Assembly: GCA_977016875.1 (NCBI GenBank)
Contig: CDRNST010000436.1
Span: forward strand, 5,828,001 to 5,892,000
Length of the DNA stretch: 64,000 nucleotides
Source of the DNA: Pavona decussata
Lineage: Eukaryota
Reading direction: 5' to 3'
Shown: positions 16,442 to 54,206 of the stretch, in pieces
How the letters are laid out: each line of letters opens with the position of its first letter
Position numbering within the stretch: position 1 is the stretch's first letter
Made by a program: the position numbers and the translations under genes
Notes under the pieces: model-generated
Told to the model about the DNA's origin: nothing
Database searches by the model: none
What the model saw: only the letters and a program-made list of their open reading frames with translations

Positions 16442-19400
16442 TTATTTCTTCACCTTTGTTGCAACTGATGCAGTGCTCCGTTTTGTTGTTCGTGAAGATA
16501 TCTGTGTTTTGCGCAGTTTCTCGCCCTTGCCCCGAGAAGCTGTCTTTCTTTGAGAGCCCGTGGGGGTGGTAGACGGGGGAGGGCCATCGGGGTCTGTTGT
16601 TGGAGTCGGGCTTTCTGCTCGCCGACTGGAAGCTGTCTTTACTCCACCTAATAATAAAAACAAACGATGCTAATGAAGTCGAACTTGCTCTGTCTCCCGT
16701 AGGTAGACATATCGGGCAATAACTAGCTTTGCTGAATGTGCCTACTTTTGAAACGGGGAGATGTAATCGACTGTATCCAGATTCCTGTCACTGGCTTGGA
16801 TAAAGTCACAAATACCGCTACATACATGTATCATGCTCTGGTAACTTGTAGCCACTGAAATGGGCACAACGACCACATTTGTAGCGGGCATTACCCTTTG
16901 ATCTACCAAATAGTAATATTGAACCCGATTGTAAGCAGCCGTGAACAGCTGTTTCGGCCATATTAGGCCTCAGCAGGGCATATATAGCTACGATCAGGCT
17001 CTGAGGTCCTATCTTTGACGCAAAACATTTTTCACTGCTTTACTATATCAATGATACCTGGATTATTTGGTTAATTCACCTGACAGTTTAAGCTATCAAG
17101 ATTGACTACATCATTATTTTCTAGCAAAACTGATATTTTGAAATAGTTAGAATCTGAAAATTCCCTTTAGTAACTCTTGAATTCTTCAGGTGTCAGGCAA
17201 GGGATAACATACATGTAGAGAAAAAGACAAAGGATTCCTCACCTGTCAGCCTGACACATTCCTCCCTATGCCTTGCATTCCATGCCTTCAGCTTGCAGGA
17301 CTTGCTGCAATAAAACACTTCTTTACATCTTGTGCACGCAGACAAGCGAATTGCAATCGAGCGCCCACACTCGTAACAGTACCGGAAGCGGTTCTTCATC
17401 ACTTGTTGTCGCTGTTTCAGAGCCTGCGTCGCTAGTGCTGAGATACTCATGTGGTCAGCGGCTTTGGTCACTGCAATACGTAATCCACAGTTTGCATCTC
17501 GACCTGGAGACGAGGGTTTAGTGGATGGATACTCAGGAGCACTGGGCCTAAGAGAACACGGAGTGCTTTCTTTGCTCGCCACGGCAGTTGGTGACAGTTC
17601 AGAAGTCATGTCCTCCTTTTCTTCCTAGAAACAAAACAATTAAAGAAAAAGAAATTGTTAAAATAATAAACCCATCTGCAATAAATGACAAAATGAAAAC
17701 CAGAGTACCGTAAAAATGAAACTTTTGAATGCAGGGGACAAAACGGAGCAGAAATAAACTGTTCTGAATACCTTTCGTTGACGAATCTCTTGTAGTAGAA
17801 ATGAACGAGCTAGACGTCACTTTACATGTAAATAAACCAAACTGATTGCAGGGCTAACACTACATGGCAAAGGGCAATTTATTTAGGCAAATAGTGTAAC
17901 TCTGGCCCTGAAGAAGGTTAGTTGTACTAGTTGAAATATTGCCCAAATAAATAAGCCCTTTGCCGTAATGTCAACCCTGCAATCAGTTCAGTCAGTTTGG
18001 TTTAGAGTAAAGTAAAGTTTAGTTTAAGTTATACAACCCGCTTTGCTATATGCGGGTTGTACATTTTTTTAATTTGTTAAATTTTAAATTATTGAAATAA
18101 AAACTGATTGATTGATTGATTGATTGATCGATCGATCGATTTAGAGTACTGTAACCTACCTCATCCACACCAGGGCTCTCTCCGTCAGTTCCAGTGATCG
18201 CCTTAACTTCACTATCCGCTTCAGCCTCAAGATCATCCGCTCCAAAAACCTCGTTTTCAAGTCGGAAACTTACGCGGCTGAACCTCATGCCATCGTTTTT
18301 ATCAGCTGTGTTACGGTCTTGATTTGTCCTAGCAAGGGAAGGGTCTTGGTCTCTCAGCTTGCTGCCTTTGTCAGGTGATTTGAGAATACCCCAAGCTGAC
18401 TGAGAAGTTCCCTCGGATTTCTGGACTCCTGAAAAAACAAGCACTAAACTGATTAGCATGTTATTTATGGCCAAAAAGAAATTATCCTGATTTTTATGAT
18501 CAAATTCTTGCATCGTTTCGATTAGGGCAAAAAAAACTTCTTTCTTTATGACAAATAGGCATAAAAGAGAAAGAAACATAACAAGTTAATTTTAAAGGAA
18601 GTAAACGTGTAAAACAAGTATTGCAGTGATTCTATGTACAACTATTCATTGCTTACCGCCTGTTTCTAGCTGTAAGTGTGGTGGTCTGCCATGGTATTTT
18701 TCAAAATCAAGTTTCATTGGGGAAAATAAACAAAGCAGTCATGACAGTAACGACAACAAGAACGTCACAAAAGTTAAGGTTTAACCCTTTCACTCTCATG
18801 AATCTCCTGACTGGCTGCCATGCATATCATTTTTAAAGTTAGATCACAGAATTTGGTGTTACAATATCACCTAGTTGATGATTTTCTTTATTCTCATCAC
18901 CTGTCTAGATGACAATGCATAGATCACGTAAGAAGAAATTACACATTGATCACTGCTGTGAGTGAAAGGGTTAATGGGTCTTTACATTCTTTACTCATTT
19001 CCATACATTTCTTCATCATTCCGACACATTCACACTGATGTGAAATGAACAATTCAAAGTGAACACACCAACTGCATTCTTGATGGTTTGCGCAGATAAA
19101 ACCAAATGATTGACTTGGAAAACCTTTAATTGCAAACCAGCTTAGAGATTGTGCTTTTACTTTTTAAGGCAGCTTATTGTTATAGCATTGCCATCATAGT
19201 TACTTGAAGTCCCTCTTAACATGCTTACCTGCCTGTTTCTCTGCCTCTTCAATCTGTTTGTCGATAAGCTCTTTCTCTTTCTTCAACACCTGGGTGCGCA
19301 ACAAATCTCCCAGATGATCTAACATTTCCCGACGGGCATTGTAACACTCGCGTTCTGTCACTGTCAGGGCATGGTAAGGAGTGTGAGCGATCTTGCGATC

Positions 19401-22400: not shown

Positions 22401-25400
22401 TTACGGACACCAAGGGGACAGGGATAAGTGTCCGCATTATAAAGGCGTCCGTTTTAGAGAGGTGGGCTTTATATGGATTTCGGTCTCTCAGGGACCAAGT
22501 AAACTGTCTGTAATAGAGAGGTGTCCATATTAAAGAGGTGTCCGTAAGGAGAGGTTCCGCTGTATGTGGTGTTCCCTTGCTTCCGAATGCTGACGTATTT
22601 CCAGCTCTCGCTTCTCAGCAAGAGCCAGAAATATGTCTGTATTCGCAGGCTAGGTGTTCCCTAACAAGCGATCAGTAATAAAGCTATTCCAATTTAGAGA
22701 TTGAACAGTCATACTTTGTCATTATCCTCTCTTGAACAAGCTATATGGGCTGGTGTTCTCCCATTATCCTCGGAATCAAATGCACTGTCTCTTATGTTAG
22801 GATCAGCTCCAGATTTCAGAAGCAGCTCTGTGATCTCAACTCCTGTTTCATCAGGCAAAGCTACGGCAATATGAAGAGGTGCAATCCCTGATTGCTAATA
22901 AATAAAATACAAAAGAATGTGATAACAAAATGAATGCGTTTTCATGAAAATGAAGTGTTATAGTCAGCATAATCTTGGCCGATTTATTTTGTTTTGTTTT
23001 TCATGTATACCTCATTTCATGCAGGAATGAAGTCATTTCTTCTAAGTTAATTAATGTCTACTGAAAGTCCCTCTTGTGTTTACAAGGATACTTCATTACA
23101 TCCCTGTCTGGAGGACAGGAGTGAAATTATCATGTACTACACACACACAACATCAACAGAAAAAATGAGTAGGTAAGAAAAGAAACTTGAAGAAATTAGG
23201 TTCCAAGCTATAACACTAGTGTGTAACAAAGATAATTTGTTAGAGTTGTCTCTTACTTCCTTTGATAACTTGGCTGAAGTTTCAGCTCCTTTCTGAAGTA
23301 AAATTTCCACAGCAGCAGTATCAGCAGCTTTCACAGCAAAGAAAAGGACTGGCATTGGAAGAGATGAAGCATTCGGGTCTGCACCTCTTCTTAGCAAAAG
23401 ACGGACCGTTGCTTCAAGATGAGGACGCCTGAAATGAAATGAAAAACATTATGCAGGCTCAGTACAGGAACTTTTTGGATTTTAACTGAGCTTAGTGAGG
23501 GGAGAAGACGCTCCAATCTTTCCTTACAGCAAAAGGGTACAACTGTGCAACTAAAAGCCAAAAGTATATCCCCTACATTACTGGTATGATAGGACTTACA
23601 CTGTAATTCACATCAATCTTTGCCTTGCAATAAATTATTACTGCCAGGAATGTTTGCTCAGTTCCTCTAACCCATTTGGTTCACAATCAATAAAAAATAC
23701 TACAATTTGAAATTTCCCCCCCCCTTCCTTTTGCAAACTTTAAAGTTAACAAAGCACCCCTTTCAGGTGGAGCCTCTCCATATGACTCACTATATGCAAT
23801 ACCCCTCCCCCACCCCCTGGCTGAGTGCCATTCTTTACTCCCTGATCTCAAACCTTTTTACACTGTCAATGGTTTTTCTAGTTTGAAACAATAAAACAGA
23901 ATAGCATGAAAGTTTCAAAAGAAAGTAATTATTAGCATTTTGCTTACCTCTGAACAGCTAGTAACACTTGCTTGCTTTGTTCCATGCTGTTTTCACTGCG
24001 CATATCATCAGCTGATTCTGACGGCAGTCTTGTGCTGCTTACTGCACTCATTATGCTGAACAGGGATGGATCCATTGCACTTAGTTTGCCAGTTTTATCA
24101 CCAATCGATGCACCATTGATTGGTGTCAGCATATCTGACTCCATATGATTATCAACAGCACCATCAATAGTTATTTTTGTTCCTTGGTCAGTAATACCAT
24201 TTATAAAACCATTTTTATTTACATCTAATTTATTTTTCATGCAGTTGTTTAAATTGTTTTCCAATTCATCACTCTTTGCATCCTTATCTCCAAATGTTCT
24301 TGCGGTAAATTCAATAATTCTGTATGTCCTTTGATCATTGTTTTCAACTGGATTGCTCCCATTCTGAACGCAGTTCTCGACACATTCATCTTCAGAATTT
24401 ACCTCGGCTTCTCCAGATTCAGTGTTTGTTTCAAACCCAGTACCCTCAACCACAACATTTTGACGGTAATTCCTATGGATGTAAGTTCCTTTTTGGAGAT
24501 CTTCCTGTATACAGTTGAATAGGTTTTCATCAGGTATGTTTTCTGCAATGTTATCTTTCCAAGTGTGCTTGGTATAGAACAGGACATGACAAGCACCCAG
24601 AACTGACAATCCCTCATCATTTAACTTGTTCACATTGGCTCCATTGTCCAGCAAGCAGTTGATGACATCTCGGTGGCAATTTACCTTCAGAACACAAACA
24701 ACAAGTGGTAAAGCACATGAATCAGTTAAAGGGAGAGTGTAAATACTCAACCAACTCAAGCAAAGGATGAACGATTTCTTTTCTTCTTTTGTTAAAGCCA
24801 AACAAAAGTAATCACCCAAGCATCTTGAGTTGTTGACAAACACCATAACCTAATTTGCCAAATTCAAGCCTTTAGATCACAAAATAAATACAGAACTAAA
24901 ATCTGATGTGATGTTACCTGTCTGTATTTCAAATTAGGAGCAAATTTGGAGAAGTTTGGAGTCAAAGGCCAGTTCATGACTTGCATGCCCTTCTCCTGCT
25001 AAGCCATTCATTTGCAACAAATAGTACAAAAATAATTATAATTCCAAAACATCTTTACTTACTGAAGCAGCTAGCAGTGCAGTATATCCAGTTTTGTCAG
25101 CAACATCAACATGAACATTGCCACTTTCAATCAAACTCCTCACTTTAATACAGTCTCCTGCAGCTGATGCTCTTAAAAGTTCCTCTGAAGCCTGCTCAAC
25201 AGGTCCTTTGGGACCCTTGTTGCCACGAACACCTTCTATAATGTCTGAGTATGAAAAGGAATTTGGAATCTGAGATAACAGTTTACCGTTGTCAATTCCC
25301 TCAAAGTCTTGTAAGGAAGGAGTTGAATTCCGGACACTCTCCTTAGCAGTGTTAGCTCGCTTCACTTTGCCTGATAAATTGTCTCCAGCATTCACATTGT

Positions 25401-28400
25401 AATTTGAGTAGTGCTGGAAGAGGAACGCACTATCAATGACTGAGCAGAGTTTGATGAGACGTTCACCGCACCACAGACCAACATCTTGCTCATTGTTAGA
25501 GTATGTCAACACCCCAGGGCCATCCCTCTCATCTCTCCTATACACACCCTGTACAAACAAACAAGTACAACAGGTTAAACCCTGCAAGGTATCATTGAAG
25601 TGGACTCCTGTGGTATTATGAGCCCAGGGGAATACTCCAGATTTCAAGTGACGGGGATGGTCGAATGGGGGCAAAAATCAAAACCCCAAAAAATCCCTAG
25701 GGCTTCCAACAAAACCCCAAAAAATCCCTGGACCAAACAAACAGGTGCAAAACAAGTTTGGTTGTACTTTATTCGCAGAACTACACCGCCGGGATACGTG
25801 GGCACTACCACGAATCTTCAGATTGCTTTGAATACCTAAAAAAACCCTACTCAAATCAAGCCACCCCCAAAAAATTCTTTGATCATCCCTGTCACTTGAA
25901 ATCTGGAGTACCCCCCCTGGGATCATGAGCACCACCCATCTACACCCTCTCCTTTTACATATCAGAAATTACCTGTTGTACTCAGATTGTGATGTAATTT
26001 ACTTGCGAATATCTCAAACTTCTGCTGTCTTTGTTGTCTATGAGTGTCATAGCATCAGTTTACGGCAACTTTTTGGAATTCAGAATACGGTCCTTTACTG
26101 CGGACACCATCTGGATTGCCAGTTACCGTCCATAATAGCGAGAATTTATTTCAGTCAAACATGACATTGACATGACATTGGCCTTATGTCATTGTGTAGT
26201 TCCATACCCACCCCATGGAAGGTCATCAGAATTTCCTAGGTGGAGGGGTGTCTTAAAAGCCAAAATTTTAGAAGCAAAATATGAAGCTTAACTGGAATTT
26301 CCTGGGGGGAGGGGGATGTAAAACAAAAACTTTCTGTGGAGGGAGTACTGGATATTTTCTGGAACTGCACATTGGTGTGAAACAGACTTAACCCTTTCCC
26401 GACCAAGAGTGCCATATGGCACAAGACGCAATTATGAGCTCAGTATTTGGTCAATTTGTGTGAAATTTGCACAACCAAAAGATCTTTGAAAGATCTATTA
26501 ATTGAAGGCATAAAATCATGCCCCCCTCCTATATGAGACTTGATTAACCACCCCTCAAACTTTTGGATTTTTTTTCCTTTGTACGTTAAGGGTTCAGTTG
26601 ATATCTTACAACAAGCAATGCACTGAGAGCTGTACATTAAGCTATAGTTTAGGGGGATACCCAGTATGTACAACGAATAAGAAAAATTTTCAATGTTTTT
26701 CTTCTTTCGTTTTGGACTTTTCTCACTCTCATATGTGACCTCCTCCATCTCTGTTGGTGTGATTTATAGCACACTCCAGAAAATACCTTTTAAATGGTAT
26801 ATCACATGTGGTATCCCAGTTCATAGTTAGCGATTTAGAAAAATTCGCCATTTCCCTCGGACGGGAAAGGGTTAAGCGATTTTCAAGTGTGTTTACAAAC
26901 TAAAGTAAGCTACCTTTATGTATCACACACCTCAAATTTACTTCCACTAGGGAAGGTGAATGTTCCAAACCCTTCTTTCTTGTCATTTTCAAAGTGGCCC
27001 TCAAATTTTGTACCATCTGGCCAGCTATAAACTCCTTTGCCATGCTTTCTGTCACGGTAAAAATCTCCACTGTAACTCTAAAGTGAACAAAACAGTTTTA
27101 AAACTTTTTAATCTCTCACTACAGCTGTATCACTTATCCCTGCCCCCAGGATGGGATGACAGTCCATACTCACAGTACATAACTTAAGTAACTTTTTTCC
27201 ATTTCCTAGTAGCTCTCCAGTGACAACTGATGGCTGTATATACAGTCAAAACCCCCCTTGCGACCACCTCTCGTAAACAACCACCTCTCTTGAAGGACCA
27301 CCTTTCCAAAATACCAAAATTTTCCCAGTCAAATCACTATAGTTGGAACCTCTCATAAGTGACCACCTCTTGTAAGGGCAGATCATGACCACTTTTAGAG
27401 GTGACAGTCGTAATTTTCTTTTGTTTTTAACCTCCTGTAAGCGACCACTTGTCACAAACGTCCTCACATCTATCCCTGGTCGGAAGTTAGACAATTTGCA
27501 GCATTGTCGTTAATATTAAGTTCCCTAATTTGCCTTTGTAATATAATATGACATCATGGCACTCTTGGGTAGTACAGGAGACATGAAATTATGTCACAAT
27601 CAGGGTACTGGGCTTCCTGAAATAGACTTGTCCCATTTCCCATATTAGTCATGTAAGGTAATGCATCACAGGCAAACCATCAACTTGAATACTGAAATTC
27701 TTTGGCAAAGTAATTTTGGAAAGTTTTTTGTGGCTACTAAATCTCTGGAGTCACCTTGTGTTAATGGTTCAAAACTTAGTCTGGCCTCTCGTAAGTGACC
27801 ACCTCCTGTAAGCGACCACCTAGGCTTGACGTTTTGGGTGGTCGCTTACGGAAGGTTTGACTGTATTTACTTTTATTACCAACAGTAAATTTATGCATAA
27901 AATTACAGACAAACTACATATCAATTTTGTAAAATTACTGTCGCTGCTTTCTCAATACATCCAGGTTCCCTCTCCACCGATTGTGGCATTATATTAAAAG
28001 CCAATAGTTTCATGTAGCTACATTGTATATTTTACTAGAAATACGTGACTCGCAAAACCTCGCGAAGCTGGGGCTGGGTGGAAAGCCCTCTTTACTCGTA
28101 TTGTAGCATCAAACGAGGAGATTAAAAGGCACATCAGATTTTTTTTTTGATGAGCATGGTGTTTTCGTAGGTTAGCGGTTGAAAATCTATTTGTGACGCG
28201 ACGTAATGTACAACGGGCGTGCAGCGCTGCCGTGTTCGATGAATTTATTTCGCACGGAAAATTATTTACCGCGGCCACAAAACGTGTAATTTCTTTAATG
28301 CAATCTTTCACAAAAAAGATTTCTAAAAGAAAGGGAAAAGATTCTGGAGAGATAGTTCTGTATCCAGTGAATATTGATAAACATTGCAGTTGAAATTTGA

Positions 28401-31474: not shown

Positions 31475-32413
31475 TTATTTTGGCAGATAGTCAATGTCTA
31501 TAACACTCAGCACTTGCTCTATCACTTTAGATCCCCCAGTGTTGTCCTGATGCATTTGTAAGTTAGCAAAATGGCTCCTTAGGTGCTCAAGAGCTTTCTT
31601 ATTTAAATTATTATCTTCTTTTTCTCTTTCATACTCTTTGCTCAGTCTATCAATTTCTTTCTGTAATTTTGCTTTTTCAATTTGATGTTGTTGCTCTAAG
31701 AAGTATTCACAGTTTTTCAAATTTTCCTCAAATTCCCTTTCCTTTCGGTCCAACCTTGACTGAAGTTGCTCGTTGTCGAGTTTTTCTCTATTCAGGTCTG
31801 ATTTAGTTTGGCTTAAAGTTTTCTCCATTTCTTTCTTCTCAGTTTTAAGTTCTTCCAAATCTCCTCTGGTAACTTTCAAGTTTGCATGATAACTTCTCAC
31901 ATCATCTTTCAACGCTCTGTAATTCACTTTCAAACGTTCATATTTCTTTTTCAAAATAAGCAGTCTATTTTTCACATGAGCGTCTGATTCGGCCACAACT
32001 TCATACTTTTCTTTCCAAATACTGATCTCATTTTGTGCCGATTGTAACATCGCGGCGAGTCTAAGATTTTGCATTTTCGCCTTTTGTAGAAACTTTCGTA
32101 ACATTTTCAATTCACTTTGATTCCATATGCATTCATCTTCGTCCTTCTTCTGCGGTTTACTCTCATGTTTTTCTTCTCTTTCACGTCTGACCCTGGAAGC
32201 AGCCTGCCTTTTATCGAGACTAGTACTTCGTCTTGAATTCAATTCTTCATCTGTTGCTTTTTCTTGCTCATAATAAACTTTCCTGTACACCTCCTCAAGA
32301 AGATTGGTGTTTTCTTTTTCTCTGTCGTCTACCACTGGACTTATTAGCATCTCCTCTACACTTCCGAACTGAAATTTGGGAGGAAAAACTTTTGCTACCC
32401 AGTGATCTGCCAT
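31475..32413 (-). CDS. CCDC160: Coiled-coil domain-containing protein 160-like (312 aa, single coding exon)
   Basis: Start at aagATGGCA (32413). N-terminal HWVAKVFPPKF and LEEVY and C-terminal NKKALEHLRSHFA match recalled vertebrate CCDC160 motifs (HW...FTPFF, MEEIY, NNRALELLR). Long heptad-rich core. A 5'UTR acceptor ttttctcag sits at about 32456 and a candidate upstream donor CAG|gtaag at about 33769. Confidence 0.8.
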   Translation of the reverse strand: MADHWVAKVFPPKFQFGSVEEMLISPVVDDREKENTNLLEEVYRKVYYEQEKATDEELNSRRSTSLDKRQAASRVRREREEKHESKPQKKDEDECIWNQSELKMLRKFLQKAKMQNLRLAAMLQSAQNEISIWKEKYEVVAESDAHVKNRLLILKKKYERLKVNYRALKDDVRSYHANLKVTRGDLEELKTEKKEMEKTLSQTKSDLNREKLDNEQLQSRLDRKEREFEENLKNCEYFLEQQHQIEKAKLQKEIDRLSKEYEREKEDNNLNKKALEHLRSHFANLQMHQDNTGGSKVIEQVLSVIDIDYLPK

Positions 32414-35400
32414 CTTGAATGCAAGAAGTGTCAGGCAACAGAACACATTTTTTCACTGAGAAAAGTAGAGGAGGCCTGGATCGAGAGCACTGCATTGTGG
32501 CGGGAAATTCACGCGGGATAGTCCACGGGATATGGGTTACCTTTTTATTTTGTCCCGTATTTTTCTTGGTTGGGATTATTTTTGAGGCGGATAAAAACAA
32601 CAGATCATGCAATTCATTTATCTTTGAACTGTGCTAGGGGGTAAAAGGACCGTGCAAAGGGATTAGGATTTATTTCTGAACACGTATTAGACCTTCGACT
32701 AAAAATCACCTCGGGAAATGCCCGCAGTTCAGTGCTGCTACACGGTGTTTGATACTAAGCAGTAAAGCAGGTGCAGTGTGAACGAAGGCTCGTGGGCTCC
32801 CAAATGAATCCGGTAACATGTGAACATAACCTCATCATAACTTCATCATTATCATCATCATCGTCGTAGTTGTCAGATCAGGGTACGTGTATGAATTTCA
32901 AGTCACTATGAGTCCCATCCAGGAGCCATAATCAGGGATTATGGCTCCTGGTCGCATCCTCATCGCTCCTTCCCATTATTTAACAGCAGATAAGGAGACC
33001 CTAGAAACAAGATTCGTCTGACACTAAGCGGTTATCTAAACCACACAAACTAGAGTATGCCTATGTCATTTACTGATTAATGCATCATTCGCACACAAAC
33101 TAGAGTTTGAAAGTCGTATTCCGTCCTATTCAATCTCGTACTCGTAGTTAAATCTGAAAGACCCTATTTTTTTCTGTTACACAAACATTCCAAGCCATTA
33201 CAATGCCTTCCCGAGTTCTTTCAAGTGTATCTATTAAATCCAAGACCAATCCACAATGTAGACACACGAAAGGGCAGGGTGTTGTCAATAGGTACCAATT
33301 TTTAGTAGGAGTGTGGTGCCTGAACTCGATACCCTTGCCCCATTTCAGACTAAAAGTCGAATCTACAGGAAGACAACGACCAAATGCTGGGAGAAATTGT
33401 CGTCTCACCGTACCCTTTAATTAAATATGAAAATATTTCATCTTGGTGATCATTTCCTCTATTCCCACGACCTGTTTGTTTAATCAAGTAGTGATATTGT
33501 AAGGAGAATTTATATGTTGGTCAGTATTGAGGGTAAAAGGGTTAAGAGAGACGTTTCGTGCTCAGAGCAAACTTGCAGTCTCTCAGTTCTCCCGGCGATG
33601 GTAAAGGGTACGGACAAAGTAACCGAAAAAACCTGGCAGCGGCTAAGTCGCTCTCTCGGGGGAAGGTTGAACTGAATAGTTCGCGCTTTACCTTACACGG
33701 CATCTTAAACTCTGAATCTTTTCCCATGAAAAAACAAACAAACAAAACTCAACGGAAAATTTCCTTACCTGTTTTTCGGACTATTTAGCGGACATACCTG
33801 TTAGACTACAATGGTGGAAATCTATATTCTATTTTAGTACCAACCGTCCAAAAACCGTAACTTTATACATAAACAAATAGCCTCACCGGCTAAGAAAATA
33901 CACCCTGCCTCTACCAGTACGGCATAAACGGCCACGCACAAATCACCTCATTGAAGTTTCTTTTGATAGCCGATATAAGCAGGACACAAATTTTAAAGGA
34001 TAATTACTTCCCGTAAAAAAAATATCTAGAACATTTTAAACATATAGCTTCATTTTTTGCATCTAAACCATATGACTGTGCGATTTTGTTTTATTTTAGG
34101 GTAATTTCATCCAGTATCATTAATTTCAGAGGCTTAAAAATTTTCGTGTCCGTAGAGCTTGTTATAAGGAAGTGAAATAACCACTTTTGTCAGCACGACT
34201 TTCCTTAAATGGTTTACTTGCTTTCCCTATAGGGTGTTTTATTTGTGTCGAGCAATGGCATTAGGAAGTAAGGGTGCTCCACAACCTACTGAGTAGGGGT
34301 AGGGTGCTTGAGTGTTTGTAAGGCGCGCTGCTCGCACGAAAGCTCTGGCACCAAATAGGTAAGCTAAGAAACGATAAGCTAAGCTAAGATAAGAACATTA
34401 GAAAAATGAGCCGTTGTTTCCCTCTTTATCAACTCTTCCCACACTTTGATTGGCTGGAACAGATAACTGATAACTCGTACAGCGCGGCTGATTCTATGAA
34501 AATAATTTTAAAGATGACTGACTGATTTCGTATTGTAATGCATGAGCACTGTCATAAGTGAGTTAAGCTCCACACCCCTCCCCCACCGGCCCTGAAAACG
34601 GTCATCTGCGATAGTAAATTACACCCTAAGAAGTTGTCCGTTGTTGCCACGTTCCAATGTGTCGTTTATCGAGCCATAAACAGATCAAGTGAAAAATAAA
34701 CTTAATATTTCTCTCACAAGTTAAAGTCATTACTCAATACTTTCATTTTTTTATTTAAACTTTAACGATGTGGTAACAACTGTTATATTTCCCTGGATTG
34801 ATTAGTGCCTGGCCCGCTGAAATGAACATATTGGCGCATCACTAAGTGAATTTAACTTATTTTATGTCTGCCTGCATACATCATTTCGCTCCATTTTCGC
34901 TGTACATTGTACGTTGTTTCATTGTGGTTGATTGTTTTTTTAACGGGTAACATAAATTCGCACCAGGTGAACAGTATTAGAACAATGACTTGGAAGTTTC
35001 GTTTCCGCTATTCTTTCCTTTTAGACATAGTTGTTATCTTTTACGCAATATTGTTTTACAATGGAAGTACATAATAACAATTCACTACAAAAATAGATTA
35101 GAATTCACTTATGATTGAGTTTTTTAATCAAGTTTGTAAAAAACCGCCTGTTTTTTAGTTGCTGGTAGCAGTACAGAGATAAAAATTGAATGACTTGATT
35201 GTTAACGTTCATTCAAATCAGAAAAACAAAAATGGACTGAAAAAAATTACGCATGCACTGAAGGTTATACGAGCAACCCTCCCTTGTGAAAAGGATTCTT
35301 ATTGTTTACATGATTGATAGCAAGAAAGATTTGCCCTAATGTTTTACAAAATGAATGGTTCGGCAGTTTCCTACCTGTAATCAACTGATATGTGTAAGAC

Positions 35401-38800: not shown

Positions 38801-39984
38801 GACTATTGACATCCGAAATTTTGACAGGCAAATTTCAGGTGGGCGTCTTCAACTGTTTTAAATGAGACGTCTGATTTCATTGGCATGAATCACCTTATAA
38901 CGCAATTGAAATCTTCCTAGAGGTTTCGCGCTAACTGCAAAATCCGCCAGGCTTAGAAACAGAAATTAAATTAATCACACCGTCTATTGTGACCGCTCAC
39001 TAACTGAAATGCAAAGTGGATGGACGCCAACATTGGCGACGCGTTTTGCTCAAATTGTTCAACCATCTGCTCAGTTGAAAACAAGACACCTTCACTCGAA
39101 GTTCAATTTCCTGGTAAAGCATCGTTCTTGTTAAATCAATTCCATTTTTGTTAAATATGTCGTTTCTGTTGCTGTACTGTTTAAGAAATGTATGAATAAA
39201 TATACTTCGCCAAAGCTATAATTTGTGGTTTGTTTGGTGATTGAGCAATCAAGCCCTAGTAACTGCCTAACCGTTTTAGTAAACTTATGCCACCAGTTGT
39301 TTAAGAAAGATTTCTTTGCGGTCAAAGTAAATATCATGTAATATTTGCCTCCTTGTGGGTGGAATTTTTGAAATCACAAGCGTCAAAATGTCATTTACTG
39401 GGCGTATTTTCAAATGAAAGCTTGAATAGCCATGATTATTTCCGTGGCGATGTGGGCAGCGTTTAGTGGGGTAATTACGGCAAGAAGCACTTTGAAGCAA
39501 ACGGAATTATTCATTAGAAGTACCCTTAATTGCGAGGCCTTAATGTAATCCCTCCATAATGTCAGCTTCATTCATAATGGATTGTTTGCGAGTAAAGAAG
39601 ATGTGAATTTGACTTTATTGTTAGATCGAGTAGAAAAGTTTACATTTAAGGTTTGCCGATGTTGTCATTGAATAATAGTAAAGTATTAAAGTGCTACAAT
39701 AAAGAATATAAATAAAGAACGTTTCCTTTAACGTTCGTTTCCTGCTTTCAAAGAGCTTTTACGACCTCAAGTAACATATCCGTATAAATAAGATTTGCGG
39801 CAGCTGGTTTGCAAAGTCCAGTACTCTTAGTACAAACCGTACAATTATTTCTTGCCATAAACACGAACAACTCTCCAATTAGGACACAAAACTAGCGAAC
39901 AATGTGGAATAATTAACGGGTTGCTTTGTTAAACAATATCGCTCTTTACAACTCTTCTTCTTTCTTTGTGCGCCGCTTGACTAG

Positions 39985-40080
39985 AGCATGCGCGAGGCTC
40001 CATGTGAAGCCCTGTGATTGGTCAGTTTTTGGCAGGTGCGTTGCACATTACATTGCTCCTCGAGAAAACCATTTCAGTGT
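39985..40080 (+). promoter_or_regulatory. Putative promoter of the SNAG exon
   Basis: NRF1-like GCATGCGC at about 39986, reverse CCAAT box (gattgg) at about 40017 and Inr-like TTCAGT at about 40073, all 90-180 bp upstream of ATG 40165. Confidence 0.4.
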
Positions 40081-40164
40081 CAATCGAGGTCTTGATGCTC
40101 TTCTTGGTTCTCTAACGACAATATTTATTTAGCGTTGAAACGTTTGGTTAGCTACGATTCCAAG

Positions 40165-43100
40165 ATGCCAAAGTCATTCTTGGTCAAGAAATCAACTGCG
40201 CTCTCGGCACCGCACAGCAGGAGCACGGAAGGTAAAATCGTTTTTTGAAATCTTTGTTTGAAAGTAGCTAAAATCACGACTTTTACAAAATATTGTGGCT
40301 TGTAGATGTAACAACTATATGTCAAGTATGCCCGCCCCAATCCGGCTAATTTCCCATAAGCGAATTTTCCACATTTAAAAATGTTAAAAAGCGCTAGCAC
40401 TTTGGTTTGGAATTTCCACGGCCAAAACTTAGCGGGTGATGAAATTAACTACAAATTTTGACAGATCTAGGTGAACGAAGATCGGCGAAGTAAATTTGCG
40501 TCCCGTAGAGTTTACCCTGAATAGAGTTCACGTAACCTGCCTCTGAAAATCAACAAATTCACCCTATCTATATGTAAATAAAATCGATTCAGTTGAAGAA
40601 AAGACTGTTTGAAGTAGGATAATATTATCTTCATGCATAGTTCAAAAACGGATATATAATCAAGCTCTCAAGAGAGTTTTTGTTTTCTAAGTGCTGTATT
40701 GCAGTTAAACGCTTGCAGTCTAAGAGTAAGATTTATTTATTCGCACAAAACGTTAGCCATTTTCAGATGAAGCGCATATCAACCTGTGATAATTTTCAGT
40801 CTAGCAACGCAAATCAGGAAATTGCGATAAAATTGCTAGTGATAAAACGTCGTAAATCCTTGAGATTACGAGACATCCGTAACGAAGAATGACTCTGAAA
40901 CAGAAATTAAAAACAACTAAGTACACAAAGAGTAGTTTATATATCTATACCGTGTTTTATTGGTCTTAATTTCGCGGTAAATAAACGAGATTGAAAACGA
41001 AACTGACCGCTTAAGTGAACAGCCCAGTGGAGCAAAGAAATAACAAAAAAATGCGAAAACAAATCTGATTTCCCAGTAAATATAGTAACCCTACAGGGAA
41101 TGAATCACAAAAAGGTTCTCTCTTTAACACAGGTGTTTGAAAGTGGACGATTCAAGAAAAGACCCTTTTTAAATATTCATGGCTCTTCTGTTTAGTTGTT
41201 TGGAATATCACAGGTAAAATCTTCTTGCGATAAACGAAAAGTTAAATTAACGCAGTGAAGATGTCTCCCACCAGTCAAGACATGTGCTTTAGAATAAGAG
41301 GGCTAACGAACAACTCGCGAGAAATTCAAACAAAATGACAAGAACATGTGTTTGAGATTTAACCGCTAAATAAATAGGTGAAGAAATTTTGGGGGGACAA
41401 GCACTTTCATATAAATCGGGCAACAGAGCATGAGATGGACGAACAAAGAAACACCACGAATTACTCAATCAGGAACAAGAATTTATTTCCTTAAACTAAT
41501 TTTTTTAACGCCTGAAGTTTCGAAATATCATTTTTATTGAAGCGCGGTGTTTTTTCGTAAGCTGTCTGTGAAATAATAACTATTTCTCAGCTTTAACGGT
41601 GGCCTTACGTTTAATGTCAATTTTTTTTTCACCAACGAAAATTAAAGGATTTTCGGTTCTAAGAGAAAACCTTTACATAAAATAGATTCAAAACTTTCGC
41701 GTTTATTTCTGGTTGAAGCTCAAATGTACGAGCGCAAAAGTCTCATTGCGAATTCAAAATTCGGCTTAACTTTAGGTGTGGATTAAGTATTGAAGCTGTG
41801 CTATTAATTTTACGCCTAAAACTATCACCATTGTCTCTGCTTTCTTTGCTTGCGGCATCTGAAACACCGGACTAAGCAACGCACTCAGCCTCGTAAGAAT
41901 TAACCGATTTAATTTCTTCCTCAAAACTACAATTGGCTCAAGTGCAATATCGATTTCTTTATTATGAATTACCAAGTGTCGACCATAGAATCATCGAGAA
42001 TAAGTATAAACAAATTCAGTTCTCGTTGTCATTCATATGTTTGGTGGGAGCGATTCGATAAGTACAATACTTCTGTGCTTCACTAATTGTGTTTGAAAAA
42101 GGCAAAATGAATGTACATCGCGACTTTTGAATTTACTTCATTCATTGTGTTAACAATAACAAACAATATTGCCCGTTTTATATGCACTGATTGAAGTACA
42201 CTTTGTTTTGACTTATTTCTCAAACTCTATCTTCTTCTCAGATGAGAAAAATAATAATAAATAAAAAACACCGATCTATACCGTATAACATACATCCTGG
42301 TTTCAAATTTAATCAACTAATTCGGTCTTTTTTAATTCTAAAATACACTACCTAATTATAAAAGTTGTCCTCGGAAACGAGGTATACAATCTTAAAAGGT
42401 TTTTTGATGTATTCAATTCTGATACAGTGATTGTACAATAATTGCTTTTTTAAAAATGTAAATTTAATTAATTTGCGATTTCTAGAATGATTTACTTTCG
42501 TATGATATGAGGTTCGAGTGCTTTCTACTTCAGTTTTGTCTTTCAGATTATTTTTGGTCAATTACATAAGGCAAAATAATCAGGCCAAGTAGTTGTTGTG
42601 TTTTCTGTTTACTAGATCGTGGCAACAAACACTCAACATATCAAAAGATTAGTATACTAAAATATTCTTTTAACGACTTCCTCATTTCACTTATTACTGC
42701 CAGAATCCGAAATATTAAGTCTCCAATACGCACTCACCGAAGGTTCAGTGTTATTCAGTATCGTAAAAAGCAATTGGAAACAACCACTTGAATATACGCC
42801 ATATCTTTGTCTGAAATTAACTTGCCAACAAGGTGATTTAGTTTTTTCTGAATAAGCCAAGAGAAAATAAAACAATAATCTGCCCTATTGTGGTAGGAGA
42901 GGCAGTCAAAACCAATATTTGTCACCGGCAGGAACAGAAGTTTGGCAGCTTCATCGCCGAATGATCAATATTTCTCGCAATCTGTCACCCGAAGTCCATT
43001 AAGTTTAGGATTATCAGCTCGCGGCTCGCTCTTCATATTGCTTGACTGTGTTGGAGTTGATAAATTAGTTACTTTGGAAACAAAAGATATCGTGAAACTG

Positions 43101-46100
43101 CGCTGGGGAGTAAGCGAAGAAGCATTTGCTGCCGACATTGTTTCTATTTTTGAATTTATTCGTTTTCTTTTTGTGGAATTGAAGAATACTTCAATCGTGG
43201 GCCCTTTTTAAAAAATATCATCTTCATGGCGATACTTTGGGAAAAATTAAAAAAGGAGGTCTTAAGTAAGAGGATATTGCAGATTCCCGCCGGTTGGGAT
43301 TTTTATGATATCAACTCTATCCAAGTCTTAAACGGTGCTTTTCTTAAACCAATTGAAAAGTGATACATCTTTTTTCCGTTTCTTTTTAGTTTTGTAACAC
43401 GAAATCAGCCAACCGCAATTTTTTCTCTAGATTACTAGTACAATAATGGACTCCCTGAATATCACGATACATTACTAAAGGGAATCGAAGTTGGTTAAAA
43501 ACTTTCGCTGAAGCCACTGATTTTCGCGTCAGTATCGCCGCGGGTGGTTATAAGTTACTGGTATAGCACGGAGAAACTTATTCTGTTTAACCAGGGATTG
43601 AATCATTGAGATTCTATTTTACTCCCAACAAATACCCACATGTTCTACATTGATAGGCTGAATATCATCGGGGGAAAACGAACACTTCTTAGATGTCTTT
43701 TTTCTTTGCTCTTGCCATCTTCAAAGGCAACCTTAACTTAAACAGTCAGACTGAGGGATTTAAACAATTTGATTCTTACTCAGATAAAGTACGATGGCTT
43801 TAGTGAGTTATTTTATCTTACTGCAATTTTATTCGGTGCAGTATTATCTGTTTCTCGTGAATTTGTGGTCAGTCAGGTTAATTTTCTAAAAAAGGGATAA
43901 ACTTTAAAGGTCAAAGTTTGGTCTTACCTACAGTTTACTGGTGACAAAGTGGACTAATGGCCAAATTGCGCGTCACACTTCACGAGGCCTGAATTCAAGC
44001 TTGGCATATGTCAAGGTCATGTTGTGGCCTTGTGAAAAAGAGAGACATTTAGATTCACTAGTGAGCTAGTGTCATTTTCAGTGGCGGGAAAATTAGCTAG
44101 CCGTCGTCATTTTACTGCGAGTTTTTGCGAGAACAACGAAGTTACAAAAAACAAGTCCTCGAAATGTAGGTAATCTTTCAGTTTTTTTTTTTTTGGGAAT
44201 CCCAAAAGGGTTTAGCTATCATCATTCAAAACAATTGCGTCAACTTCGTCGCTCACAAAGAGTCAAATGAAGCTTCCTGGGAAATATCTTTTCTTAGTAC
44301 TTCGCAAAAAGCTCGAGTAAACCTTCGTATTCGTAATCGTACTTTACTAGAATCTAAAGGACTCTATTTTCTTCCACCCATGATGATATTGATTCTTTCA
44401 ACGAGTGCATAAAATCGGCGCCAGTCAGGGTTACCCGTCAAAATGTTTTGGGCCGGTAAACCTGTAATGGAGTAGCAGTTCGTCAGTTCCATAATACTAA
44501 GGTCGCGGGGATTTGACATTTTCCCGCACTTATCTGTCACTGGTTACACTCGCATCCTCGAGACTCGACTGGCTCCTGACAATATTTGCGGGTGTAAGCG
44601 ACTGGAATTTTGAATACATTTATAGTTTGCCTCGTTCTTTATCAGTTTTTTCTTGAGCGCTGTGAAACAACTAGCGTGAGTTTATGCAAGCACCTGGGTA
44701 CATCTATTTCCATGCATCCCAGATCGATGTTACACTGTATGTAAGTGGTAAAGAAATTTTTCCACGCTATTTCTCTTGATGCCGGTGTATACTTGAATTA
44801 CGGGCTACAAGAAAGCGAGCTAGTGGTGACAAAAGCTTCGCGGGTTACAGTTCTGCTAAACTTTAATCTCGCGGTCGATCAATAAGACATCTTAATATTC
44901 CTAGTCTCCTTAGTCCAAGGAAGCTGGAGAGAACAGCTGCGCCTTTGTGGCCACTAAGATTAGATGATGATTAGTCTTGCGATTATGTTAGAAGAAAGTC
45001 GTAACGAAACTGCTCCAGAAGTGCATGAATGAAAATACAATCAGATGTTCTTTGTCTGATTTTTACATCCTGTAGGGTTTTTTCGTAAAGGGGTTGTTGT
45101 CAAGGTGATCGAACTTTCGATGTCATGATCGGTGGATTAAGACTCTGCTTTTGTTTTATTTATCCATAGAAAGAAACTCTAGCTCCACGTTGTCTTTCTC
45201 TCCAACCATGTGTATAACAATTAATACAACCCTTCAAATGAAATACTTCTTGCAGTGGTTTAGCATCCAAGGCCGGAGTGGTCATACTCTCAGTTGTTTG
45301 TAGCCTGTAGCTCGAGTGATGACTAACCCTGTGACATCCTTTTTTCAGTCAAAGCAGTAAAAGCAGCAGTGAAGCTCCCCGCTTCTGAAGATGCGCCCCG
45401 TCTGACCTCACCAACAGAGCAGGATCACAAATGGGAGCAGTGCTGGGAACCGCTTGACATGTCAGAATACGAGACCAGTGTAGAGTCCGTTCACAGCGTG
45501 GTCAGAGAATTCCAGCATCAGATGTCAAACTATCCTAAGAATTCTATCTTTTATCCACCCGCCATGATGGAGGTCTTTCAATCCCCGCGACGCGAGTCCA
45601 CTCCAAGCGTCAATGATTCCAGTAAAGACAAAGAAAAGCCATTCAAGTGCAGCTACTGTGTGATGTCATTCACTCGCCCCAGTGATCTTCAACGTCATTT
45701 GCTGATCCATAACAACAGTAAGCCGTACAAGTGTGAGGAGTGTGACCGTGAATTCACTTGGTTTGGAAACTTTCAAAAGCACGTGCTCTCTCACATGGGC
45801 GGCAGTACCAGGGCACCGGGGACTTTGCCCTTCTCAGCCATGTTCACGTTCCTGGCACGTGAGCAAGTCAAGGATCTTTTCATCAAAGATGGTGAAAAAT
45901 ACAAGTGCCGCTTGTGTGCGAAGGATTTTACACGACTCAGTGGCTTGAAGACGCACATTCGCATGCACACTGGAGAGAGGCCGTACGTATGTGAAGTCTG
46001 CTCTTTTGCCTTTACCACGTCACGTGCTCTGAAGATGCACGTGCGCCTGCATACTGGGGAGAAACCGTACAAGTGCGAGGAATGCGGACGCGCTTTCACC

Positions 46101-46820
46101 AGGAGGGACGAGATGCATACTCATATGTATATTCACAAAGGTAAGGCGATCTGCTTATCAGTCTTCAGTGTCTATTTTCTTGTCAAGCTCAAGAAGAAGG
46201 AGAAGAAAGTCAGCAAGCAAGGAATATTTTTTTGTTTATGCACCATGCGGAGATTTCCCGATAAAATTTTTTTATAGAAATGAATTGTTATGGCTAAGGA
46301 GAATTTAAATCAAGAATTGACTCCTCTTAGTCTTGAATACCACACAGAGTTAACTTTGCTAAGGAGACTATAAATAGAGGTTCATCCATTGTTACAGTTT
46401 TGTTCACTGAAATACACTCTGTCCTTTTCACGGGCGTTTAAATGACAGATTCACTTTGTTCAAACAGGTGAGAAGCCATTCAAGTGTGACATCTGTTCAG
46501 CGTCGTTTATTCGCTATGGCCATCTTCAACGTCACTTGCTGATCCACAGTGATGACAAGCCCTACAAGTGCAAGGTGTGTCCCAAGTCCTTCACCCAGTA
46601 TCGCAACCTCCAGACTCACATGTATAAGCACACAGGAGAGAGGCCCTACAGATGCAGGTACTGTCCCAAAGGATTCACGCAGTATGGCACCCTTCAGGCG
46701 CACGAAAGAACACACACTGGAGAAAAGCCTTTCCAATGCCAGTATTGCGACAAGGCGTTTATTACCTCATCGCATCTGCGATGGCACATAAAGACCCAGC
46801 ACAATGCTAAGAAAGATTAG
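40165..46820 (+). CDS. SNAG-domain C2H2 zinc-finger transcription factor (9 fingers in a 2+7 arrangement, about 403 aa)
   Basis: Exons 40165-40231 (MPKSFLVKKSTALSAPHSRSTE, G|gtaaaa, phase 1), 45349-46140 (branch point gactaac, ttttttcag| acceptor, G|gtaag donor) and 46468-46820 (aaacag|, TAG). Total 1212 nt in frame. Nine CxxC..HxxxH fingers, several with TGEKP-type linkers. AATAAA at 47755. Confidence 0.85.
43226..43265 (+). CDS. Candidate alternative first coding exon of the zinc-finger gene (no SNAG; MAILWEKLKKEVL)
   Basis: ttcATGGCG...GTC TTA A|gtaag. 40 nt, phase 1, in frame with the acceptor at 45349, giving a 394-aa isoform. Confidence 0.5.
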
Positions 46821-51261: not shown

Positions 51262-54206
51262 TCACGGTGTTGGTGTTGGTGTGACTGGTGAATCAGGACC
51301 ATCCCTCCTGTGATTGGCTTCCTCTTTGAGTTTGTGAAGGGGAATACTTACAGCCAATGAGCTTGCACGAGAGCTACGGGTTGTTCTTGTGGTGCTTCTA
51401 CTAATGATTGTTTTCCTGTAGCGATCCTTTCTGCTTGGACCTCTGCAAAGAACGCGATAAAATTCCTGACGGTAGTTCTCTGAGAATATCACATAAAGAA
51501 TCGGATTAACAGCGCTGTTGGCATAACCCACCCACGGGACGACCATGTAAAACTCCATTGGAATCTTGGGCATTAATGGCTTGTTAAAATTATCTATCAC
51601 TTCCAACGCTTGCCATGGTAGCCACGACAGAGCGAACACAATAACCACAGTTATTAACATGGCAGTCGCCCGTCTACTTGAGGACTGGGCTTTTTTGTTC
51701 GAGCCTAAGTTTCGATGGCCGGGGAGTTTTCTGCTCCAAAGACGTAACCCTGCCAAGCCGTAGAGTACGGCGATGATTATCAGCGGAATGGCGTAACCGA
51801 TCAAAAAGAGAAGAGTAGCGAAGGTGTGCTCTGACATCGTCTCCCAGCCCATTTCATCATCACAAACCATGATGTCTGTTCCCTCCAATCGTCGATTCTT
51901 GGACGCCATCATAGCTGGAACCGTGAATCCGAGGGTGCACAGCCAGATCATAGTGATCGAGAAACGCACAACGTTTCGTGTCATGATCGTCTTCATCGGG
52001 AACAAAATTGCAAAGCTTCGGTCAAGAGAAATTGCCACTAAACTTAACACCGAGGCGACTATGGATCCTACCATAGCGGAATGAAAAAACTTACACAAAA
52101 CGTCACCCATGACTGTGCCAAACCATTTATTATACACGAAAAACCATTTGATCGTGTAGGGTATGTCTATGGTCATGAGGAGATCCGCAATGGCCATGTT
52201 GGCGATAAGTGTGTTCGTTGAACTGCGCATGTGGTTTACTGTGAATACGATGTAAATCACGACCGCATTACCGATCAATGCCAGTATAAAACTGGTAACT
52301 GCAATAATGGTTATTGCAATTGTAATGTTCGGTGGAATGGGTGGCATAGAAAATCCACCACCCTCCGCTGTGGAGTTTTCTGTTGTGTTGGAAAGCGCAG
52401 AAAGTTCTGTAAAAGAAGAAAAAAGGACAAAACAGGAGGCCTGTTAAAAGAAAAAAAGATTTCGATTGATCTGTAATACATGCGCAATTATTCTTGTAGG
52501 CTCTATAATTCTTGAACCCAAGAATTTTTCTCTTTTTTAGGCGATTAAAAAAGACAGTGCAGTCGAGAATATAGCTGTCGGTATTTTTTCAAAGGTGTCT
52601 CGTAGTCTTGGGATGATATAATAGGTCATTTCCGAGTTGCTTTAAACCTCATTATGAAAGCGAGGGTAGGTGCAAAGTTTTTATCATGAAAATTAAATTT
52701 CATTCATATGCAAACAAAACTAATTTCCATATGGAAAGCTTCGCACTTAGCCTCGCTATCATAATGAGGTTCACAGCAACTCGGAAATGGCCTATTCAGT
52801 GTGTCGAAAGAAGAGTAGAGGGTGAGACGTGCTACAAACTACAAAGTAGCAGTCTGTGCCTTAGCTTTTGGTTGCCGCACTACAGTTGAACCTCCCGAAA
52901 ACTATGAAACCTAAGCGGTCGCCCACGGAAGAAGGTCGTTAATGAGAGGTGGTCGTATAGGAAGGTGGCACCTCCGGGGAGACCCATAAAACTGTATTTG
53001 TTAGTACCTATTGCTGACTTATTTTTACATCCGGGGATCGATTGTTGTACCTCCTGCCAACAGATACTTCTGGGACAAAAAAGCAAGTATAGTATTTCTC
53101 GTTTACTTTGGAAGTGTTGGGATAGATGGTTTATTTTTGACTGAAAAATAAGAATAAAACACTTTCAACTACTCAGTGGATGTTCAACTGCAGCTATGAA
53201 TAAACTGCAAATTGAGGACCGCAAACGAAAATGCTGCAAGTATGCGCAGGATCTGTAAAAGATTTAATCATCCAAAAATAAACAAAAGTGGCTCGAATAA
53301 CTACAAAATCACGCGACCTTCAGTTGAGGTCGTGTTTACTGTTTCACGTTATTTATAAAAGACTTGCTAACTTGGTCCGAAGAAATTGCTCGAAAAATCG
53401 GAGAGTTCTAAATACGTACTTTAAAATTAAGATTCACTGTTCCTGTTAGTTCCTGTGGTTGGTGAGAAAAATTAAAAACACAGGAATTCATGCAGAAAAG
53501 GAGGTTAATATGATTTGGAGCCTTCTGTGAGGTGGAAGTGATAACAACCGGCTAAAGTCAACGGTAAAAATTCAATTACATTTGATTGTATTCTGTTATT
53601 AAAATAAACACAGGGGGACGAGGAAACTGACAACTTTTGTTTCCTCGACATCATTTACCGGCAGGCAAAGCAATTTAGAACAGATAAATCTCGAGTTGAA
53701 TGTAACCGTGATGTGACTTTATCTTGTAACTCAGTGCCACGTTTCAAATGAAATTAAGTGCTTCAGTAGCATTACTTTTCTGTGTTGCTGTTTACTGTGA
53801 TGCTTTCTGACTAAATTGTTCTAACGTTTGAGTCTGTTAATAAAATCAACGACGAACCTACCCTGTGGTACGATTTATTCTGCTGTGGTGTGACCATTCT
53901 GCTAAAGTGTGACCATTCAAATGAAAGCTTCTGAGCAGGACTTTCCCGTGGTACTTTCTATTATGCTGTACAAGGTGGTTCTCAATTTTGCGTCTCTGGA
54001 TGAAATCCGTAAGTATGACCATTCAAATTAAAGCTACTGAGCGGTACTTTCCTGTGGTGCTGCTTATAATGCTGTACAAGGTGATTCTAACTTTCGAATC
54101 TACGGATCAAATCCGAAAGTTCCGAAAGTTGTCGATGATGCCCTTTATTTTTTAGTACCATTAGGAAGCCCTAATGGAGAGTAATCAACTTACCTGTTGG
54201 CTTCAT
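51262..54206 (-). CDS. Class A (rhodopsin-like) GPCR of neuropeptide-receptor type, about 385 aa
   Basis: Exon 54206-54194 (ATG AAG CCA ACA G|gtaag) joins exon 52406-51262 (cttttacag| acceptor, phase 1). Seven hydrophobic segments with GN (TM1), MAIADLL (TM2), WFG..LCK (ECL1/TM3), DRS, W (TM4), YAIPL (TM5), SWLP (TM6) and NPILY (TM7). Spliced N-terminus has NTT, NST and NIT sequons. Confidence 0.92.
52621..52795. mobile_element. MITE of the ATAGGCCATTT family in the GPCR intron
   Basis: ataggtcatttccgagttgct..aacctcattatga / tcataatgaggtt..agcaactcggaaatggcctat. Confidence 0.8.
52883..53190. mobile_element. Degenerate pogo-like MITE
   Basis: ta|cagttgaac ... gttcaactg. Confidence 0.5.
53740..54120 (+). 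repeat. 106-bp minisatellite, about 3.5 degenerate units
   Basis: Repeated gaccattcaaat..aagct..tgagc..actttcc.gtggt units. Confidence 0.85.

Follow-up and report, generated by a model that had tools for sequence, protein, structure and literature searches.

A SNAG-motif first exon on a nine-finger C2H2 zinc-finger gene of Pavona decussata, a candidate recruiter of LSD1-CoREST

Introduction

Does a zinc-finger gene that looks generic by its fingers begin several kilobases further upstream, in a short exon that would make a repressor of its product? The question is raised by a gene of the coral Pavona decussata, which lies in a stretch of 64,000 nucleotides (positions 5,828,001 to 5,892,000, forward strand, of contig CDRNST010000436.1 in assembly GCA_977016875.1). 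We call this whole stretch the window and use its coordinates throughout. The initial annotation had read the start MPKSFLVKK and a phase-1 splice donor in 67 nucleotides (nt) at 40165-40231, upstream of exons encoding C2H2 fingers, and these letters match the sequence exactly. Here, we consider it likely that the coding sequence truly opens with this stretch, in a gene of three exons (40165-40231, 45349-46140, and 46468-46820), and that the gene encodes a nine-finger DNA-binding protein whose SNAG N terminus would recruit LSD1-CoREST, i.e., a repressor. LSD1 docking and repression are the activities that the motif leads us to expect.

Results

A three-exon gene with the motif at its start

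The coding part of exon 1 (40165-40231, + strand, 67 nt) opens with an ATG at 40165-40167 followed by CCA AAG TCA TTC TTG GTC AAG AAA, which places the SNAG motif MPKSFLVKK (40165-40191) directly at the translation start. It has 22 codons and a single G at 40231 (phase 1), and it translates to MPKSFLVKKSTALSAPHSRSTE: with its initiator Met, the motif extends to MPKSFLVKKS and is followed by 12 variable residues. These limits are given by the sequence itself, by conservation, and by the end of a complementary DNA (cDNA) block at 40231. The ATG has an A at -3. Since there is an in-frame TGA at 40093-40095 and no in-frame ATG between this TGA and 40165, the latter is the first possible start of the frame. 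The donor of exon 1 is the GT at 40232-40233, in the context G/GTAAAA. Intron 1 (40232-45348, + strand, 5117 nt) ends with a T-rich pyrimidine tract and the AG at 45347-45348, so that exon 2 begins at 45349. The initial annotation had also proposed that 40231 joins 45349 in frame, and this holds across the intron of 5117 nt: the split codon, G+TC, encodes Val, after which the reading frame stays open for 263 codons and into the fingers.

Exon 2 (45349-46140, + strand) encodes a variable linker with a conserved patch, WEPLDMSEYE, then fingers 1-2 and fingers 3-5, set apart by a spacer of about 38 residues, as judged from the translation, from the Pfam matches (zf-C2H2 and zf-H2C2_2), and from a cDNA block that reaches 46141. 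Intron 2 (46141-46467, + strand, 327 nt, phase 1) has its GT at 46141-46142 and its AG at 46466-46467. The coding part of exon 3 (46468-46820, + strand), delimited by translation and Pfam, has 116 codons for fingers 6-9 and a stop at 46818-46820. The three coding pieces (67 + 792 + 353 = 1212 nt) give 403 residues and a stop. Hence, the protein has nine C2H2 fingers in a 2 + 7 arrangement, five in exon 2 and four in exon 3, which Pfam recognizes with generic C2H2 models only. The 129 N of the window were left as they were, and the exons were searched one by one, with a natural orthologue, P0002, standing in for the full-length protein. The 22-residue peptide of exon 1 had no match in Pfam, and the ESM Atlas search for look-alikes returned generic zinc-finger clusters only.

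Transcripts of an orthologue contain the exon

P0002, found by a word search with exon 2, is a protein of 398 residues that is 79% identical over this exon. The contigs that encode it, nine in number and 1.3-2.5 kb long, come from nine runs in a single sequencing series on a related coral. These contigs lack introns relative to the window gene and are therefore RNA. The N terminus of P0002 is MPKSFLVKKSTAQTVPQSRFTE-V-K, and the product is continuous across both predicted junctions, reading ...HKGEKPFKC... at the second one. When one of its cDNA contigs was compared with the window by blastn, three blocks were obtained: one ending at 40231, one ending at 46141, and one starting at 46466. In a three-way alignment, the cDNA base that corresponds to 40231 is followed immediately by the one that corresponds to 45349. 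The SNAG exon comes first in all nine RNA contigs of the orthologue that have a full open reading frame (ORF). The initial annotation had staked its gene model on reads across this junction. The junction orthologous to 40231-45349 is present in the RNA contigs of the related coral, in nine runs, and in a RefSeq model of Nematostella (see below).

Where does the transcript begin? The cDNA contigs L001, L003-L005, L007, and L008 have 72-98 nt ahead of the ATG, about 72-84 nt of which are not adapter, and these 5' parts align to the window from about 40084-40111 onwards. None of these six contigs runs into a further upstream exon. Their 5' ends fit transcription that begins a short way upstream of the SNAG exon; from the orthologue cDNA alignments the start would lie near 40084, and we place the 5' untranslated part of exon 1 approximately at 40084-40164 (+ strand). 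Near this presumed start there is an upstream, out-of-frame ATG with six codons (40094-40114). The surrounding GATGCTCTTC is kept in the orthologous loci L010, L011, and Actinostola L012 described below, and the ATG is also found in L009. It could be a mini-upstream ORF or a part of the initiator region.

The exon is conserved across Hexacorallia

We compared the genomic loci around four orthologous finger exons (L009, L010, L011, and Actinostola L012). All four anthozoan loci have a SNAG exon ahead of the finger exon and in the same orientation, and it ends with G/GT in phase 1. It is found 5.2 kb upstream of the finger ORF in L009 (MPKSFLVKKSAG..., 22 codons), 4.3 kb in L010 (MPKSFLVKKSNG..., 22 codons), 3.2 kb in L011 (MPRSFLVKKSES..., 22 codons), and 7.8 kb in Actinostola (JAUJYZ010001170.1, L012:2202-2271; MPRAFLVKKSSA..., 23 codons). 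The Actinostola motif, MPRAFLVKK, has Ala at position 4. The initial annotation had named the lack of a conserved SNAG exon upstream of the orthologues as a result that would speak against it; these are four further anthozoan loci with such an exon. The GenBank model of the Actinostola gene, P0016 (labeled "partial"), begins inside exon 2 and does not include the SNAG exon.

Apart from the choice between Lys and Arg, residues 1-10 are invariant among six aligned sequences, and residues 11-22 are variable. The ten motif codons vary at many synonymous positions (e.g., TCA/TCT/TCG, TTG/CTG/TTA, and GTC/GTT/GTG). An invariant peptide with many synonymous changes indicates selection on the peptide, and judging from these codons the ten-residue motif is under purifying selection across Hexacorallia. 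A search with just fingers 1-3 and the spacer as query identified the Nematostella RefSeq orthologue, XP_048588794.1, which begins MPRSFLVKKSSTVAIPPSR (MPRSFLVKKSS...) and shares the WEPLDMSEYE patch further on. The sea-anemone orthologues have Arg at motif position 3. Overall, orthologues are 63-85% identical to the window gene.

Hydrozoan orthologues have a different start. They include Clytia XP_066925905.1, as well as P0027 and P0228, which we read as hydrozoan-like because their N termini resemble that of Clytia. At the Clytia locus, neither the gene itself nor the 10 kb upstream of it contains a SNAG-like start. From this distribution, the SNAG motif on this gene is a feature of Hexacorallia at least, either gained there or lost in Hydrozoa.

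A conserved promoter-proximal block precedes the exon

The roughly 200 bp ahead of exon 1 are conserved between stony corals and sea anemones. In a five-way alignment of the window, L009, L010, L011, and Actinostola L012, the block at 39867-40060 (+ strand) has a mean column identity of 73%, with long invariant runs. By blastn, window 39869-40133 matches L012 and window 39867-39951 matches L011. The runs, picked by eye, include CCAATTAG, TAATTAACGG, a stretch that contains AACAAT, GCATGCGC (39986-39993), an inverted CCAAT box, TGATTGG (40015-40021), and GGCAGGTG (40031-40038). We read the invariant runs as candidate factor-binding sites. Non-coding conservation of this depth supports a real, regulated promoter at the SNAG exon; it is consistent with a regulated developmental gene and is not proof of one. 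A second conserved block, TTTGAAAGTAGCTAAAATCACGAC, follows the SNAG donor directly (40243-40290); L009 and L010 have kept it, and L011 has kept it in part. It may serve in splicing, as an intronic element, or belong to the promoter as a downstream element.

Other SNAG exons of the genome and the placement of the family

In the whole 602-Mb assembly, the degenerate DNA pattern for M-P-[K/R]-S-F-L-V-K has seven matches, against one for the reversed control. All seven strict MP[K/R]SFLVK starts lie on short first coding exons of about 21-34 codons that end with G/GT in phase 1. One is the start at window 40165 (+ strand), ahead of the nine-finger gene. We assigned the others by reading their downstream ORFs: a Gfi-like six-finger locus (C18:1253789, - strand), which we take from its fingers to be the Gfi orthologue, two tandem Ovo-like genes (C114:948529 and C114:1012384, both - strand), an unnamed five-finger gene (C117:1070632, + strand), a Fezf-like gene (C204:547256, + strand), and a bHLH gene (C310:1142942, - strand). 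At the unnamed locus (C117:1070632-1076073, L023), two frames that lie about 4.4-5.4 kb downstream of an MPKSFLVKK first exon encode five C2H2 fingers; of the fingers compared, these are the most similar to fingers 3-5 of the window gene (51% over 79 residues). At the C310 locus (L025:4323-5666, - strand), a frame of 448 codons ends in a bHLH domain (Pfam HLH, 61 bits) and is preceded at 4.3 kb, on its own strand, by a SNAG-type first exon; no fingers were found within 20 kb. Lys is at motif position 3 in five of the seven exons, including the Gfi-like and both Ovo-like ones, so within this set the Lys form is the normal SNAG of the lineage.

Between the fingers of the window gene and the finger ORFs at the other SNAG loci of the genome, identity is 28-51%, in a comparison that covered this genome's own ORFs. 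Such values are ordinary for any two sets of fingers. Set against the 63-85% shared with orthologues, they define a family separate from Gfi, Ovo, and Fezf, and the nine-finger gene is apparently a cnidarian family of its own within the known class of SNAG-motif finger repressors. All named relatives in the word search that used just fingers 1-3 and the spacer are cnidarian; resting on that restricted search, a cnidarian-only distribution is a tentative conclusion. An exhaustive protein search with the same region of the orthologue gave as its best 150 matches giant poly-finger proteins, aligned through repeated stretches, and is uninformative on bilaterian orthologues; the whole region was matched only by a sea-anemone cluster, P0018.

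These loci suggest a broader scenario, which we regard as possible and rather doubtful. The SNAG peptide could be a portable phase-1 first-exon module in cnidarians, placed ahead of at least five finger families and a bHLH gene. The nine-finger family would then be an anthozoan-level acquisition or retention, giving LSD1 a DNA specificity without bilaterian counterpart.

Neighboring genes

One neighbor is a single-exon rhodopsin-family G protein-coupled receptor of 361 residues (51262-52347, - strand; Pfam 7tm_1, 175 bits), located 4.4 kb downstream of the finger gene and convergent with it. Four further frames on the - strand, at 23944-24846, 25036-25674, 31475-32446, and 18046-18579, have 177-323 codons and no Pfam match.

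Discussion

The observation of the exon is confirmed, and its interpretation is supported as far as sequence evidence reaches. How would the protein work? The most likely function, in our analysis, is the recruitment of LSD1-CoREST. Methionine aminopeptidase would remove Met1, given the Pro at position 2; removal of Met before Pro is expected from the established specificity of the enzyme. The predicted mature residues 2-9 are PKSFLVKK. This free Pro-Lys-Ser-Phe-Leu-Val-Lys-Lys could then enter the amine-oxidase catalytic cleft of LSD1/KDM1A as a mimic of the histone H3 tail. LSD1-CoREST-HDAC would in this way be tethered to the sites bound by the fingers, and the genes there would be repressed. 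All of this, from Met removal and LSD1 docking to repression and a developmental role, we infer from what is known of SNAG proteins.

SNAG's initial nine residues bind the catalytic cavity of LSD1, where they mimic the H3 tail; SNAIL1(1-20) and INSM1 peptides bind with a Ki of about 0.2 uM, and the hexapeptide PRSFLV is sufficient, with Pro1 and Arg2 being crucial (PMC5453194). MPKSFLVKK fits this LSD1-binding peptide, in agreement with the initial annotation, which had read the motif as SNAG. GFI1 holds LSD1 on chromatin via its SNAG motif, and vertebrate GFI1 works through LSD1, according to two studies (PMC7613766, PMC5896174). In Nematostella, NvInsm1 has been discussed in the same SNAG-LSD1 terms (PMC9020782), and Lsd1 and a CoREST complex exist and are reported to act in development (PMC8786827, PMC9400249).

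Several points weigh against this interpretation. The hydrozoan orthologues do not have the motif, which shows that SNAG is not indispensable to the finger protein. The coral motif has Lys in place of the Arg that is crucial for LSD1; the charge is kept, and the affinity may differ. For this family, LSD1 binding and repression are predictions from the motif. The use of the exon 1-exon 2 junction in P. decussata itself is deduced from orthologue transcripts. There is also a precedent for caution, as a SNAG exon predicted in silico for amphioxus Fezf was absent from transcripts (PMC2942887), and this case is why transcript evidence matters here. Finally, and weakly, a SWIRM scan of the genome gave three matches and no LSD1 locus; short exons escape such a scan, which makes it no evidence of absence. 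We read the three matches as MYSM1, SMARCC, and ADA2.

Could the motif be there by chance? It might be an accidental open frame in intergenic DNA, or a part of another gene unconnected to the finger exons. In the 64-kb window the degenerate pattern for M-P-[K/R]-S-F-L-V-K has one match; 100 shuffles that preserve dinucleotides gave none, even when one mismatch was tolerated. A chance origin of the SNAG frame is excluded. In seven species, moreover, the exon has kept its position, its length, its phase, and its protein sequence, and the orthologue mRNAs hold its junction with exon 2, so that a lack of connection to the fingers is barely credible. A less improbable alternative, which we still consider quite unlikely, accepts the exon and supposes that it is one of several alternative first exons. 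The main products would then be isoforms without SNAG, made from another promoter or an internal start, and the motif would act as a conditional switch. The Nematostella model is named "isoform X3," which implies that several isoforms are predicted, and window 43226-43265 reads ATG, 13 codons, and A/GTAAG, a possible second first exon. We rejected this candidate, since it has no conservation in the four orthologous loci: blastn finds the SNAG exon and its promoter in them, and nothing that matches the region 43100-43400. All nine full-ORF contigs of the orthologue start with SNAG, and the strongest non-coding conservation sits ahead of this exon.

The alternative that we take somewhat more seriously, while judging it unlikely as well, concerns the partner. 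The exon and the motif would be real and the motif would work mainly by a route other than LSD1, such as Ajuba-type LIM proteins with PRMT5, sub-nuclear localization, or protein turnover. In Nematostella, the complete SNAG domain of SNAILA is required for nucleolar localization (PMC4507178), and co-repressors cited for SNAG include Ajuba and PRMT5 (PMC2688512). The replacement of Arg by Lys, at a position called crucial for LSD1 binding (PMC5453194), points the same way. Against this, the ten invariant residues are the ones that fill the cleft of LSD1 in its solved complexes with SNAIL1 and INSM1 (PMC5453194), the first exons ahead of this genome's Gfi-like and Ovo-like finger ORFs have the same Lys form, and vertebrate GFI1 acts through LSD1 in the studies cited above. 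Recruitment of LSD1-CoREST by the nine-finger protein is thus the reading that we retain.

If so, an apparently generic poly-zinc-finger gene becomes a candidate recruiter of LSD1-CoREST, conserved across hexacorals and equipped with a deeply conserved promoter. The Nematostella orthologue, together with the published work on its Lsd1 and CoREST (PMC8786827, PMC9400249), could be an entry point to LSD1-targeting factors in cnidarians. There is also a lesson for annotation: gene callers based on single open frames miss the SNAG exon, and the Actinostola GenBank model was made without it.

How does the gene compare with known systems? Like Gfi1, Gfi1b, and Senseless, it has an N-terminal M-P-[K/R]-S-F-L-V-K on a short first coding exon and C2H2 fingers at the C terminus, and recruitment of LSD1-CoREST would be expected. 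Identity between its last four fingers and fingers 3-6 of the genome's Gfi-like ORF is 44%. It differs from Gfi in having nine fingers (2 + 7) instead of six, and a separate six-finger locus, C18, has its own SNAG exon. We rejected an identity with Gfi1/Senseless, the C18 ORF being only 29-44% identical to the finger exons of the window. We also rejected Ovo/OVOL, which has four C-terminal Ovo-type fingers, because the two C114 loci are 33-44% identical to these exons.

The first nine residues are presumably those of Slug/Scratch, MPRSFLVKK, apart from K for R. INSM proteins start with MPRGFLVKR and have INSM-type fingers. Snail and Scratch resemble the window gene in having the motif at the N terminus and the fingers at the C terminus. 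They have four to six clustered fingers and SLUG/SCRATCH boxes (PMC2688512), and by this description they differ from the window gene, with its nine fingers, its 38-residue spacer after finger 2, and its WEPLDMSEYE patch. INSM differs, also by description, in that NvInsm1 is a single six-finger gene (PMC9020782) and the present one has nine fingers.

Fezf offers another likeness: a SNAG domain without a Fezf box is present in non-bilaterian Fezf and in three "Fezf-like" genes of Nematostella (Irimia et al. 2010, PMC2942887). The latter are NveFezf3, 12, and 30, and the Nematostella orthologue of the window gene could be one of them. Over four fingers the window gene is 46% identical to the Fezf-like ORF of the genome. 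The six fingers of Fezf are more than 75% identical across phyla (PMC2942887). An identity with Fezf was rejected at 28-46% to the C204 ORF, to which the reading as Fezf orthologue goes.

Among known proteins there is also the Nematostella vectensis orthologue XP_048588794.1, which is 72% identical over fingers 1-3 and the spacer. It bears the name "zinc finger protein 347 isoform X3," in which "zinc finger protein 347" was given automatically. It differs from the window gene in its 546 amino acids, with extra degenerate finger-like repeats between the N terminus and finger 1 and an aberrant C terminus in this isoform. A literature search found no paper mentioning this accession. The nine-finger SNAG family is already present in one RefSeq model, and its description as a SNAG family was not found in the literature. 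The gene probably represents one more family of LSD1-recruiting repressors and not a new kind of system.

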